DNA of 33,787 bases from Octopus bimaculoides (lineage: Eukaryota), in assembly GCF_001194135.2 (NCBI RefSeq), contig NC_068987.1, forward strand, positions 24,989,778 through 25,023,564. The letters are read 5' to 3'. The translations under genes were made by a program, and so were the position numbers. The notes under the pieces are model-generated. The model made no database searches. It was given only the letters and a program-made list of their open reading frames with translations, and had not been told where the DNA came from. Positions 4,102 through 30,539 of the stretch are shown here, one piece after another (positions within the stretch are counted from its first letter, which is position 1; each line of letters begins with the position of its first letter).

Positions 4102-4251
4102 CTTTTGGTTTTGAGTAATACACCGCCATAAAACCCCGACTGTGAGCTGACCAGTTCGCCGAGTACCAAATCAGCATTCTGTTAGTAGAAGAAACTATAC
4201 TAACAGTTTTCGGTCCACAAAATTGACCAATCATATTATCTGTTTCAATAT
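4102..4251 (-). CDS. Multi-CUB gene exon e10 (150 nt, phase 1-1): C-terminal part of the 4th CUB domain in the window
   Basis: Acceptor ttttctcatcggcag, donor AAG|gtaaat. Peptide DIETDNMIGQFCGPKTVSIVSSTNRMLIWYSANWSAHSRGFMAVYYSKPK carries the CUB signatures FCG, S..N.M.I and RGF...Y. Not in the ORF track. Confidence 0.92.
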
Positions 4252-4351
4252 CTGCCGATGAGAAAACAACGATAATGTAAAGAATAAGAATAAAGTGTAA
4301 TGTAGAGAATGTTAGAGCATTAATACAACCATACGAGTATTGATACAGACA

Positions 4352-4600
4352 TACGAGGGGATACCCAAAAGAAACTGGAATTTTGCAATATTATTGTATT
4401 CACTTAGTTTTACGTTTATACTTTTATCACCTTCAAATTATTCTCTATTTGCATCAATGCATCGGTCCTGGCGCGTTTTCCACTACTCGAAGTAGAGCGG
4501 GAACTTTCCCGAAGGGATGTCTTTTAATGCCTCCTTCGTTTTTTTTTTCTTCGCCTCTTCCACATCTGCAATTTCTGTAGCACCAGCTTTCGTCATCAGT
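4352..4600 (+). mobile_element. Mariner-like transposon end fragment
   Basis: Begins TA-CGAGGGGATACCCAAAA, typical of mariner TIR starts. No matching right end found. Confidence 0.4.
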
Positions 4601-4663
4601 AATGACCTTTAAAAAAAGTTCAGCCACATTGGGAAAAGGAAACGAACTAAGTCAATTACTTAT

Positions 4664-5051
4664 TGTTTGTTTGTTGGCACTCCATCGCTTACGACGTCGA
4701 GGGTTCCAGTTGATCCGATCAACGGAACAGCCTGCTCGTGAAATTAACGTGCAAGTGGCTGAGCACTCCACAGACACGTGTACCCTTAACGTAGTTCTCG
4801 GGGATATTCAGCGTGACACAGTGTGACAAGGCCGATCCTTTGAATTACAGGCACAACAGAAACAGGAAGTAAGAGTGAGAGAAAGTTGTGGTGGATGAGT
4901 ACAGGAGGGTTCGCCACCATCCCCTGCCGGAGCCTCGTGGAGCTTTAGGTGTTTTCGCTCAATAAACACTCACAACGCCCGGTCTGGGAATCGAAACCGC
5001 GATCCTATGACCGTGAGTCCGCTGCCCTAACCACTGGGCCATTGCGCCTCC
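4664..5051 (-). mobile_element. tRNA-derived SINE family A, full length, tail type 1
   Basis: Head GGAGGCGCAATGGCCCAGTGGTTAGGGCAGCGG with B-box-like GGTTTCGATTCCC. 11-bp TSD CAATTACTTAT at 4653-4663 and 5052-5062. (ACAA)n tail. Confidence 0.9.
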
Positions 5052-5061
5052 CAATTACTTA

Positions 5062-5702
5062 TAAATATATAAAAAAAAACATCATTATTCATAAGAAATA
5101 ATAATATTAGTGGCCGCAAGCATAAAAACCGTATAGGGAAATTACTAAATATACATAGAAAATATTTATAATTAGGGTACTAATTGGCCTCAGAGTATTT
5201 CATGACTAGTATTTTAGGCAAAGCTACTGTTTCTTAGTACCCTGGTTATATATATTTTATATATATTTATTTATTCATTTTCCTGTACGGTTTTTATACT
5301 TGCGGCTACTAATAATGAATAATGATGTTCTTTATATATTTAAAAAATAATTGACTTAGTTCGTTTTTCAATGCCGCTGGGAACCTCAAACGAATACAGG
5401 CATTGTGAAGTAAATTACCAGTATTGTTACGAGTAGAGAATCAAGTGCTTTTTGGCACTAAATTCGAAATCATAATACCAAGTTAACTGCCATTCTTTTT
5501 ATAATTTTTGCCGGGGTGAGATACAATTCTTATTCACTTGTTTTTTTTTCTACCATGCCTGTAAAAATTTTGTGATAATTCTTAGTGCTTCTTAGTACCC
5601 TAATAATATGTATATTTTATATATATTTATTAATTTGTCTATACAGTTTTTATGCTTGCGGCCACTAATATTATTATTTCTTATGAATAATGATGTTCTT
5701 TT
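5062..5702. repeat. Foldback (arms 5062-5183 and 5234-5342) plus a third, direct copy of the right arm (5592-5702)
   Basis: AGGGTACTAA/TTAGTACCCT, GTGGCCGCAAGCATAAAAAC and CATCATTATTCAT recur in inverted and direct orientation. Confidence 0.85.
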
Positions 5703-28309: not shown

Positions 28310-28486
28310 TATGTTTGTGTGTGTGTCCCCCAACATCGCTTGACAACCGATGCTGATGTGTTTACGTCCCCGTAACTTAGCAGTTCGGCAAAAGAGACCG
28401 GTAGAATAAGTACTAGGGTCGACTTGCTCAACTAAAAGGTGGTGCTCTAGCATGGCCGCAGTCAAAATGACTGAAACAAGTAAAAA
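28310..28486 (+). mobile_element. SINE family C 3' half
   Basis: CCCCAACATCGCTTGACAACCGATGCTG..CATGGCCGCAGTCAAAATGACTGAAACAAG. Confidence 0.85.
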
Positions 28487-29054
28487 ATACAAGAATATAT
28501 TCTTGTATTCATGAAAATGTTGGCTGAGAGAAGAAAGAATTTGACAAAATTCTTCAAGACTCCAGTATGACCGCAGTCAAGTGACAGAAACAAGTAAAAG
28601 AATATATATATATANNNNNNNNNNNNNNNNNNNNNNNNNNNNNNNNNNNNNNNNNNNNNNNNNNNNNNNNNNNNNNNNNNNNNNNNNNNNNNNNNNNNNN
28701 NNNNNNNNNNNNNNNNNNNNNNNNNNNNNNNNNNNNNNNNNNNNNNNNNNNNNNNNNNNNNNNNNNNNNNNNNNNNNNNNNNNNNNNNNNNNNNNNNNNN
28801 NNNNNNNNNNNNNNNNNNNNNNNNNNNNNNNNNNNNNNNNNNNNNNNNNNNNNNNNNNNNNNNNNNNNNNNNNNNNNNNNNNNNNNTTCTTCAAGACTCC
28901 AGTATGACCGCAGTCAAGTGACAGAAACAAGTAAAAGAATATATATATATATAACAAAACTGTCCGATGAACGGGAACGTGAAACTCAGAGTAACAGTTT
29001 TTTTGTTATATTTCTGCTGCTTTTAAATAAAGTATATATATATATACATATATA

Positions 29055-29218
29055 CGACGGGCTTCTTTCAGTTTCCGTCTACCAAATCCACTCACAAGGC
29101 TTTGGTCGGCCCGAGGCTATAGTAGAAGACACTTGCCCAAGGTGCCACGCAGTGGGACTGAACCCGGAGCCATGTGGTTGGTAAGCAAGCTACTTACCAC
29201 AGCCACTCCTACGCCTAT
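29055..29218 (-). mobile_element. SINE family C 5' half with tRNA-like head
   Basis: Reverse complement ATAGGCGTAGGAGTGGCTGTGGTAAG..GGGTTCAGTCCCACTGCGTGGCACCTTGGGCAAGTGTC. Confidence 0.85.
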
Positions 29219-29974
29219 ATATATATAAGATTAAGATTCAGGGATTCAAGTGTAGGAAGTTTGTAAGCTTGAAGCAGTCAGTGGAGAATGTACGGTCAAG
29301 GACAATAACGACTCGTATCTACGGTGGGTTAATTTGGGAATCCCTAGCAACAATGTAACCTTCGTGTAATTAAGATATTCTCGCCCTAATGAATAACTGA
29401 GTACCTCTCGTTGAGTTATTATTACTTCAGAGGATCAGTTAGCTAGGGAACATATGTAGTTTTGATTTTATACGTTCCAGTTTCTCACTCTTCTGCCGTC
29501 AAATCATCATCCATTTTGACACTTTTTGTACAAGTTTAGCCAAGATTAAATGACAGAACCTTTGACATTACATGGCCACTCCTCGACGCCAAGGCTAACT
29601 TGACAGATACAGCTGATGAAAAAGAAAAAAAAAGAAAAAAGTGTGATGTTTTGGAAAGAGAACTATAAAATTAAATGTAGTTAGAGTGGCGCCTGGTGTC
29701 TAGACACGGTCGTATCGGCGACGAGATGAGAGTCGGATATGTCAGGAGCACCTGGTTCTGTAAAACAGGTCATTTTAGTAGCGATTTGAAAAGTAGCATC
29801 AAGAGGCAGTACATCTTTTAGCTGCAAGTAGTGTTGCTGCTGCTGTTGTTTAACCTCAGGTAAGCATGATCGAGGAGGCATGACCAAAGTCTTTCCAGTG
29901 ATAATCATCCCGTCCTTTCTATTTTTTTTTTCAGACACACTGCGTCGAAGAATACATTATGCTAAATGCTTTTT

Positions 29975-30207
29975 CTGTTTGTTTGTTTTTTTGAAAGTGA
30001 GTATATAAAGAAATTTGGCTGCTATTTCTACCTTATTGAGCAATTAGGAAGAGGATGTTTCATTAGCTCAGGCTTCCTAATTGGCTCCAATGCGCCTTTG
30101 TTTGTTTTTCTGAACAGTAATTATATAAGGAAATTTGGGTGTTATTTTGAAGTTTGCCAAGCTATCATGAAGGGATCTTCCATTAACTCGAGCTTCCTAA
30201 TTGGCTG
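29975..30207. repeat. Two-copy 120-bp diverged tandem duplication
   Basis: TATATAA.GAAATTTGG at 30002 and 30122. GCTTCCTAATTGGCT occurs twice. Confidence 0.8.
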
Positions 30208-30392
30208 ACCCGTTGTCGTCTGTTGTTGAGTTGCCTTAAATGTACAAACTATTAACTGAAGCCATATAACTAACTGTAGGCGGCGTCGAACAAAATTAAT
30301 GTTACACACAAGCAATCAGCTAATGCTTAGAGAATGAAATCCTTAAATTTGAGATGACGTGTCACAGTTTGAAACAATTGGTGCATACGTAC

Positions 30393-30539
30393 ATTTTGTT
30401 AGAGCTGTAAATGACAGAAAGAATCCGTTGATAACATTGGTTGATTTCAGTGTCAACAGCATCTGGTTCCCAGTTGATATGTAGGTGGGTGTACTGTTTC
30501 CACAGGTGTGTCCAATCAAATGTGACTGGTCGCTCGAAC
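30393..30539 (-). CDS. Multi-CUB gene exon e1 in this window (147 nt, phase 1-1): C-terminal part of CUB1
   Basis: Acceptor gtactccaacattag, donor T|gtacgt. Peptide GSSDQSHLIGHTCGNSTPTYISTGNQMLLTLKSTNVINGFFLSFTALTK with CUB motifs IG..CG..P..ISTGN.M and GF. Confidence 0.93.

Follow-up and report, generated by a model that had tools for sequence, protein, structure and literature searches.

Cubilin carries EGF repeats and 27 CUB domains, has no transmembrane (TM) helix, and depends on amnionless for its anchoring and internalisation. SOL-1, LEV-10 and NETO, single-pass CUB auxiliary proteins of ion channels in nematodes and flies, have four CUBs and a TM segment (SOL-1), an LDLa domain, five CUBs and a TM segment (LEV-10), or two CUBs, an LDLa domain and a TM segment (NETO) (PMC9083331). 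In tandem CUB proteins such as cubilin, C1r/C1s and PCPE-1, ligand is usually bound at a surface formed by the calcium site; CUBs that lack this site, as in ADAMTS13, use other binding surfaces (PMC8051872). Here we analyse a stretch of 33,787 nucleotides (nt) of Octopus bimaculoides (NC_068987.1, positions 24,989,778 to 25,023,564; hereafter the window) that carries, on its minus strand, ten exons of a gene for a membrane protein with eight tandem CUBs.

We show that these exons lie inside a single-copy annotated gene of more than 50 kb, as a block that corresponds roughly to coding exons 16-25 out of about 26. The full protein is a type I membrane glycoprotein with eight tandem CUBs and one TM helix, and in our judgement the identity, structure and topology of the gene are close to certain. 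It is already known as a database model, though uncharacterised and misnamed.

An exon block with three exons per CUB

A preliminary description of the window, made from the sequence alone, had proposed ten minus-strand exons. We searched that strand for segments bounded by AG and GT that have the ten proposed lengths and join in an open frame through the nine proposed junction codons. The model recovered consists of ten minus-strand exons, from 30539-30393 down to 4251-4102:

Exon 1 of the block, 30393-30539, minus strand: 147 nt; third exon of CUB5; phase 1 in and out
Exon 2, 27115-27199, minus strand: 85 nt; first exon of CUB6; phase-2 intron after it
Exon 3, 21983-22107, minus strand: 125 nt; second exon of CUB6; 100% identity to Octopus sinensis
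Exon 4, 19961-20110, minus strand: 150 nt; third exon of CUB6; 98% nt identity to the Octopus vulgaris copy
Exon 5, 16365-16455, minus strand: 91 nt; first exon of CUB7
Exon 6, 13606-13727, minus strand: 122 nt; second exon of CUB7; intact in the window
Exon 7, 12367-12516, minus strand: 150 nt; third exon of CUB7
Exon 8, 10246-10336, minus strand: 91 nt; first exon of CUB8; 100% nt identity to the O. vulgaris copy
Exon 9, 8080-8213, minus strand: 134 nt; second exon of CUB8; intact in the window
Exon 10, 4102-4251, minus strand: 150 nt; third exon of CUB8; its GT donor leads to a terminal TM/tail exon beyond the window

The lengths, AG and GT flanks, nine junction codons and stop-free joining of the preliminary description were reproduced exactly, giving a peptide of 414 amino acids (aa). 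The spliced block, 1,245 nt long with 414 codons at frame offset 2, is entered in phase 1 and contains no stop. Each of the ten acceptors consists of a pyrimidine tract and AG, and the donors are all of the GTA type; in the window copy, 20 of 20 splice sites are canonical and no lesion occurs across the 1,245 nt. A different exon 3, at 20310-20186, was the sole alternative that fitted the junction codons, and it was rejected for its weak donor and lack of CUB sequence. As a chance control, we counted 4,228 stop-free chains of these exon lengths that are possible in that frame. Stop-free joining is therefore weak evidence alone, and it is homology that carries the case.

Together the exons code for the final third of CUB5 and the whole of CUB6, CUB7 and CUB8; both Pfam and the domain division of the protein confirm the proposal of half a CUB plus three complete ones with almost no linkers. 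Three exons, with intron phases 1-2-1, make up every CUB, a pattern that occurs three times in the window and continues upstream. Three-exon CUBs with phase-1 introns at the domain boundaries bear the signature of a three-exon module duplicated in tandem.

Coding potential and conservation

The 414-aa peptide matches Pfam CUB (PF00431) in four stretches with E = 1.7e-36 and 125.3 bits, against a cut-off of 21.4. At the corresponding locus of Argonauta hians there are ten exons of identical length; their alignment with the window exons is ungapped, and no AG or GT is lost. Only ten high-scoring segment pairs are collinear between this locus and the 33.8-kb window at the nucleotide level, one per exon, each ending within a few bases of the splice sites; the remaining segment pairs are dispersed repeats. 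The ratio of nonsynonymous to synonymous divergence (dN/dS) against Argonauta is 0.134 (Nei-Gojobori; bootstrap 0.089-0.192), a ratio whose exact value is uncertain because dS, at 1.19, is near saturation. The preliminary description had named the lack of a CUB match and a neutral dN/dS as grounds for abandoning the gene; neither was found. Its statement that the gene is intact holds within the window, where there is no stop, the splice sites are canonical and conserved, and dN/dS is 0.13.

Identity to the O. vulgaris copy of this region is 97.1% in the exons and 84-92% in the introns. Because that comparator is a decaying paralogous copy, described below, the corresponding dN/dS of 0.26 was set aside and not used as evidence of constraint. 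The cuttlefish orthologue, of 1,054 aa, is found on many contigs of about 4 kb, which must be spliced transcripts.

Identity and full extent of the gene

Three O. bimaculoides database entries contain the 414-aa peptide without a single difference: XP_014789071.2, its 2015 version XP_014789071.1, and UniProt A0A0L8FK92. In XP_014789071.2, named 'bone morphogenetic protein 1', it occupies residues 170-583 of 649, and the nine exon junctions are identical. Contrary to what had been proposed, the gene is thus not hidden: RefSeq and UniProt already hold exactly this exon structure. The ten exons stand, but their description as a ten-exon gene spanning 26 kb does not, since the gene has about 26 coding exons over more than 50 kb.

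We followed the gene past both ends of the window on the O. bimaculoides chromosome record CM046607.1 (assembly GCA_001194135.2), where the locus is here called L004. The window is the reverse complement of L004:19843-53629 and has large gaps on both sides. Its exon 1 is L004:23090-23236, with a translation 100% identical to the O. sinensis protein. Upstream, XP_014789071.2 has four more coding exons, which encode CUB4 and the first two-thirds of CUB5 and lie beyond the flanking gap; upstream CUB5 exons were not found in window positions 30540-33787. The first CUB4 exon, at L004:5920-6015, is detectable with the O. sinensis protein and is missing from XP_014789071.2. Downstream, the annotated protein runs 66 residues past the peptide, into a single TM helix and a short tail. 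A search of window positions 1-4101 for the exon encoding them, by tblastn with the Argonauta and Octopus tails and by a hydrophobicity scan, found none; it lies outside:

Terminal TM/tail exon, L004:55968-56165: about 2.3 kb beyond window position 1

Of the earlier alternative between a secreted and a surface protein, it is therefore the surface location that stands. A second O. bimaculoides model, XP_014789070.2 ('TSG-6'), corresponds to CUB2-3 of the full-length orthologue. Assembly gaps thus divide one O. bimaculoides gene into two models, 'TSG-6' and 'BMP1', and XP_014789071.2 is truncated at its 5' end.

Orthologues and protein architecture

It had been held that orthology could not be assigned from the window. 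Protein searches, one of them with the N-terminal half of the Argonauta protein and followed by a cluster listing, found Octopus, Argonauta and cuttlefish orthologues, including a cluster of 13 Octopus proteins at 98-100% identity to the peptide, and the assignment can be made:

O. sinensis: XP_029639291.1
O. vulgaris: CAI9725984.1
Argonauta hians: two split models
Cuttlefish: CAE1246542.1

Over the part encoded in the window, the O. sinensis and O. vulgaris orthologues are identical to the peptide at 405 of 414 positions, with nine substitutions. In Argonauta, GAB1600019.1 and an upstream partial model (P0001 and P0003) have the same exon lengths and splice positions, at 73% aa identity. One gene is annotated there (L001, BAAFZT010000013.1, 7402-10001) as two partials, a 632-aa 'BMP1-like' and a 423-aa 'BMP1', which lie 2.6 kb apart; neither contains a stretch of 13 residues that the Argonauta DNA encodes across the end of exon 1 and the beginning of exon 2. 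The cuttlefish protein, named 'CUBN' (1,054 aa), is collinear over eight CUBs, TM segment and tail, although its tail sequence differs. The exact match to XP_014789071.2 and the identical exon lengths in Argonauta place the window gene in one cephalopod group of eight-CUB paralogues (group A). A second group (B) includes O. sinensis XP_029644438.1, named 'cubilin', which is 44% identical over CUB1-5.

Both the O. sinensis and the O. vulgaris orthologue are 1,066 aa long and consist of a signal peptide, eight CUBs, a TM segment and a tail of about 30 cytoplasmic residues, with linkers between the CUBs that are nearly nil. The signal-peptide-like N-terminus was read from the sequence, and each protein has one hydrophobic segment, near the C-terminus. 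The division of the O. sinensis orthologue into eight domains is collinear with the merged Argonauta protein and with the cuttlefish orthologue; Pfam counts five and three CUBs in the two Argonauta halves, eight in the cuttlefish protein of group B and eight in the abalone homologue. No member of the family that was scanned has a Pfam match to astacin, EGF, Link or LDLa domains.

Within the window peptide, the Cys2, Cys3 and Cys4 columns of the CUB fold are kept in CUB5-7, and Cys1 is visible in the domain sequences. CUB8 keeps Cys3 and Cys4 and has lost the first disulfide pair in all species compared; CUBs without this pair are a known variant. The peptide has seven N-glycosylation sequons, six of them kept in Argonauta, which fits an extracellular location. 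In octopod tails YHKF precedes an acidic end, whereas YRFV is found in the tail of Sepia and FKFV in that of a decapodiform relative (P0120); the YxxPhi tail motif is not conserved outside octopods.

The AlphaFold model of XP_014789071.2 (pLDDT 75) shows repeated beta CUB units and one helix, at residues 594-636; its inter-domain geometry is unreliable (pTM 0.35) and was not interpreted. Single CUBs superpose on the TSG-6 CUB with a template-modelling score of 0.79 and on neuropilin-1 a1 with 0.78. The top Foldseek match is cubilin CUB5-8 (3kq4_B, 8.5e-29), followed by neuropilins, PCPE-1, NETO2 and C1r/C1s, and cubilin CUB5-8 is also the best match by sequence among solved structures.

Relatives and database names

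The same gene appears in databases as BMP1, BMP1-like, tolloid-like 2, TSG-6, CUBN and 'hypothetical'. These names were given automatically in RefSeq, ENA and GenBank, and the CUBs do resemble those of the named proteins, so one might take the gene for a true orthologue of BMP1/tolloid, cubilin or TSG-6. Its domain content contradicts this. Neither the astacin protease domain (PF01400) nor EGF has a match in the 632-aa and 423-aa Argonauta parts, in the window peptide, or in the cuttlefish and abalone homologues, which were scanned at full length. Only CUBs occur in the region annotated as 'TSG-6' in O. bimaculoides, and full-length members consist of CUBs and a TM helix, without astacin, EGF or Link domains. 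Several different names, moreover, have been given to one gene across species and fragments. As the names vary with species and fragment, and the non-CUB domains that define the named proteins are absent, they reflect shared-domain similarity only; true orthology to any of the three is scarcely credible.

The comparison with cubilin that the preliminary description had drawn holds for the type of domain, as cubilin ranks first in the sequence and in the fold comparison, but does not extend to family membership. Cubilin CUB5-8 (PDB 3KQ4) is, like the octopus protein, a linker-less tandem CUB run. The octopus protein, in contrast, has Pfam CUB matches only, in eight domains rather than 27, and a C-terminal hydrophobic helix of its own where cubilin lacks a TM segment. 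An exhaustive protein search with the Argonauta orthologue gave results dominated by cubilin-sized proteins.

The gastropod proteins XP_048245301.1 (Haliotis rufescens) and XP_025105249.1 (Pomacea canaliculata), both 'cubilin-like', and the group B proteins share the arrangement of signal peptide, CUBs, one TM segment and short tail. Gastropod proteins and group B have five to eight CUBs, 22-44% identity and unrelated tails; they are uncharacterised and bear computational names only. With SOL-1, the octopus protein shares a type I topology and a CUB-only ectodomain, although with eight CUBs rather than four; SOL-1, LEV-10 and NETO, with two to five CUBs, are likened to it here by layout and not by sequence. 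The absence of LDLa from the family members scanned sets them apart from proteins of the NETO, LEV-10 and SOL-2 type. In a literature search, neither the accessions of the family nor octopus membrane proteins with CUBs gave any relevant paper.

Partial duplicates in Octopus vulgaris

Unlike the window, the O. sinensis/O. vulgaris lineage has extra, degenerate partial copies of the 3' exons. In O. vulgaris, two such copies, separated by about 25 kb and carried on opposite strands, exist besides the intact gene: L002 (OX597820.1, 94572578-94614079, reversed) and L003 (94619608-94650762). L002 contains exons 4-10, with CAG changed to TAG in exon 6, TAC changed to TAG in exon 9, and the exon-6 acceptor lost. 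L003 contains exons 7-10 and the terminal exon, with AAG changed to TAG in exon 9. Identity is 95-99% between the two copies and 85-92% with the window; the copies, being closer to each other than to the window, arose after the split from O. bimaculoides. A third locus, of about 134 kb, holds the intact O. vulgaris gene (CAI9725983/984).

Stops and a lost acceptor at two O. vulgaris loci homologous to the window could mean that the gene is a decaying Octopus pseudogene and that the open frame of the window is a recent relic. These loci, however, are extra partial duplicates and not the orthologue, and the 1,066-aa genes of O. vulgaris and O. sinensis, at 405/414 identity to the window peptide, are intact. 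With a lesion-free window copy, 20 canonical splice sites and a dN/dS of 0.13, decay of the gene is largely refuted and we consider it very improbable. Pseudogenisation of the O. vulgaris orthologue had been our first reading of the stops, and was dropped once the intact O. vulgaris and O. sinensis genes were found. A-to-I recoding of the O. vulgaris UAG codons was likewise rejected, because intact genes exist and L002 and L003 are recent partial duplicates.

A 120-aa O. sinensis fragment ends at 'VLELA', the same position as the exon-9 stop of L002, which suggests from these sequences that an L002-type copy predates the split of O. sinensis and O. vulgaris. The O. vulgaris protein CAI9725985.1 (P0002) skips the stop-bearing exon 6, terminates at the exon-9 stop and includes a spurious exon whose counterpart lies in intron 5 of the window gene (15943-16008, minus strand). 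It is a mis-spliced model of a degenerate partial duplicate.

Calcium-site signature and possible function

All Octopus, Argonauta and Sepia CUBs were aligned with the sequences of cubilin CUB5-8 from the structure searches. The Tyr/Glu/Asp/Asp signature of the calcium site, whose residues sit in the odd-numbered loops (as defined in PMC8051872), is complete in CUB2-4 of all three cephalopods, which are encoded outside the window. In O. bimaculoides, O. sinensis and Sepia, CUB5-8 have other residues at each of the three acidic positions, and the CUB5-8 encoded in the window do not belong to the calcium-binding subtype. Argonauta CUB5-8 also lack the acidic ligands, with one exception, CUB6, in which Glu alone is retained. 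Octopus CUB2-4 therefore share the calcium-site residues of cubilin, whereas octopus CUB5-8 do not, and the match to cubilin is stronger for CUB2-4 (3e-47) than for the window part (8e-20). The window half of the protein also evolves faster: Octopus-Sepia identity is 40-55% in CUB5-8 versus 51-73% in CUB1-4.

Since CUB2-4 keep the calcium site that forms the ligand surface elsewhere, they probably bind ligand. We propose that CUB2-4 may form a putative ligand-binding head, that CUB5-8 would be a glycosylated, calcium-free, membrane-proximal stalk or else a surface for cis-interactions, and that the whole protein would act as a cell-surface binding receptor. This division into head and stalk is a tentative proposal to which we give somewhat less than an even chance.

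Two more specific functions can be set beside it. One is that of a self-anchored, cubilin-like endocytic or scavenger receptor, in which CUB2-4 would capture cargo in a calcium-dependent manner and a YxxPhi motif in the tail would drive internalisation. The best match by sequence and fold, cubilin CUB5-8, the complete calcium-site signature of CUB2-4, and the tyrosine motifs of the tails (YHKF with its acidic end in octopods, YRFV in Sepia) speak for such a receptor. The position of the Tyr motif, however, is not conserved, and the motif is absent from the decapodiform P0120 (FKFV) and from the group B tails; nor are there EGF repeats, and the CUBs number 8 rather than 27. We regard this function as unlikely. 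The other is that of an auxiliary or clustering subunit of ligand-gated ion channels resembling SOL-1, LEV-10 or NETO, and not a cargo-binding receptor. Such a subunit would share the layout of a type I membrane protein with a CUB ectodomain and a short tail (comparators in PMC9083331), and NETO2 is among both the sequence and the fold matches; but cubilin, neuropilins and PCPE-1 all match better than NETO2, LDLa is lacking, and the CUBs are twice as many as in SOL-1. This too seems improbable to us.

Taken as a whole, the reading of an annotated eight-CUB membrane protein, from which a binding head and a stalk are inferred, is in our view highly probable as the best explanation of the data. 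Besides the near-saturated dS and the unreliable inter-domain geometry given above, several points weigh against it. The O. bimaculoides annotation is split, and only for O. sinensis and O. vulgaris has an intact full-length frame been demonstrated. No transcript-assembly members occur in the cluster that the Octopus proteins form at 90% identity. The idea of a stalk rests on missing calcium ligands and faster evolution, and calcium-free CUBs can bind partners through other surfaces, as in ADAMTS13 (PMC8051872).

Assembly gaps and noncoding content

The window is AT-rich (36% G+C) and microsatellite-laden, and contains eight runs of N, in keeping with a eukaryotic assembly that has gaps. All eight are intronic (introns 1, 2, 3, 7 and 9) and touch no exon. 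The closest to an exon edge is the run of 10 N at 12277-12286, in the intron after exon 7, at a distance of 81 bp. Two gaps within the span of the exon block, 26105-26603 (intron 2) and 28615-28886 (intron 1), were absent from the program's list. Reading phase is preserved over every intron that contains a gap. In gap-free comparators (Argonauta hians L001, O. vulgaris L002 and L003, and the full-length O. sinensis protein), the intervals that match the gaps hold no extra residues or CUB-coding segments. With the same exons in the same order in these comparators, no exon is hidden in a gap, and the order and orientation of the exons are correct. At 11048-11837 (intron 7), a 790-N gap and the microsatellite beside it stand where both gap-free O. 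vulgaris copies have only about 100-150 bp, and the estimated length of this gap may be too large.

Towards window position 1, homology to O. vulgaris intron 10 stops near 955, next to an (AAT)n/(ATT)n tract (959-1069). The (ATT)n tract of O. vulgaris is followed immediately by the acceptor and the terminal TM/tail exon. Beyond that tract in the window the sequence is unrelated, with a plus-strand open reading frame (ORF) at 374-775 that resembles those of long interspersed nuclear elements (LINEs) and has no Pfam match; a 1.5-kb assembly gap lies just outside the window, beyond this ORF. An insertion in O. bimaculoides intron 10 has probably pushed the terminal exon to 6.4 kb from exon 10.

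Several introns contain remnants of mobile elements. Intron 4 has fragments of a reverse-transcriptase ORF at 17405-18898 on the minus strand, in the same orientation as the gene; 17405-17725 matches RVT_1 with E = 9.5e-09 and 17838-18287 matches weakly. They are a decayed LINE. Dispersed short repeats, probably SINE-like (short interspersed nuclear) elements, occur at 29055-29167, 24005-24065, 19020-19225, 13832-14007, 4808-4969 and 14932-15105. The element at 29055-29167 matches several non-collinear sites of the Argonauta locus at up to 88% identity, that at 19020-19225 is found several times in the O. vulgaris loci, and two inverted copies of another element yield near-identical ORFs starting 'MFIERK.LKLHEA'. 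Intron 1 also contains 1.9 tandem copies of a 120-bp unit (29978-30206; 77% matches). Upstream of the exon block, adjacent plus-strand ORFs of 91 and 115 aa at 32389-33014 resemble remnants of transposon proteins; the second, at 32667-33014, contains MSLKMHFLHSHLDFFPANLGAVSDEYGEHFH and, as the only one of the two scanned, had no Pfam match at E<=0.01. Rfam and tRNA scans of the window gave no matches.

Significance

The gene model has been public since the first O. bimaculoides genome release, and little of it is new. Part of what follows from the analysis is curatorial. The names BMP1, tolloid-like 2, cubilin and TSG-6 are, for this gene, artefacts of domain similarity; the O. bimaculoides and Argonauta annotations each divide one gene into two models; and the O. 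vulgaris entry CAI9725985.1 is a mis-annotation.

For the biology of the family, the arrangement of signal peptide, eight CUBs and TM helix is conserved across cephalopods and resembles gastropod proteins, and we know of no studied member of this eight-CUB membrane family. A broader picture would be a mollusc-wide family of self-anchored multi-CUB receptors, in which a calcium-dependent, cubilin-like CUB2-4 head would stand on a calcium-free CUB5-8 stalk. In the O. vulgaris/O. sinensis lineage, partial duplicates of the exons for CUB5-8 are decaying. Members of such a family could be endocytic receptors that need no amnionless-like partner or, in cephalopods, synaptic receptor organisers resembling SOL-1 and LEV-10. 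Taken together, these propositions on the family are doubtful. The division between CUBs with a calcium site and CUBs free of calcium nevertheless offers a simple structural hypothesis that can be tested.

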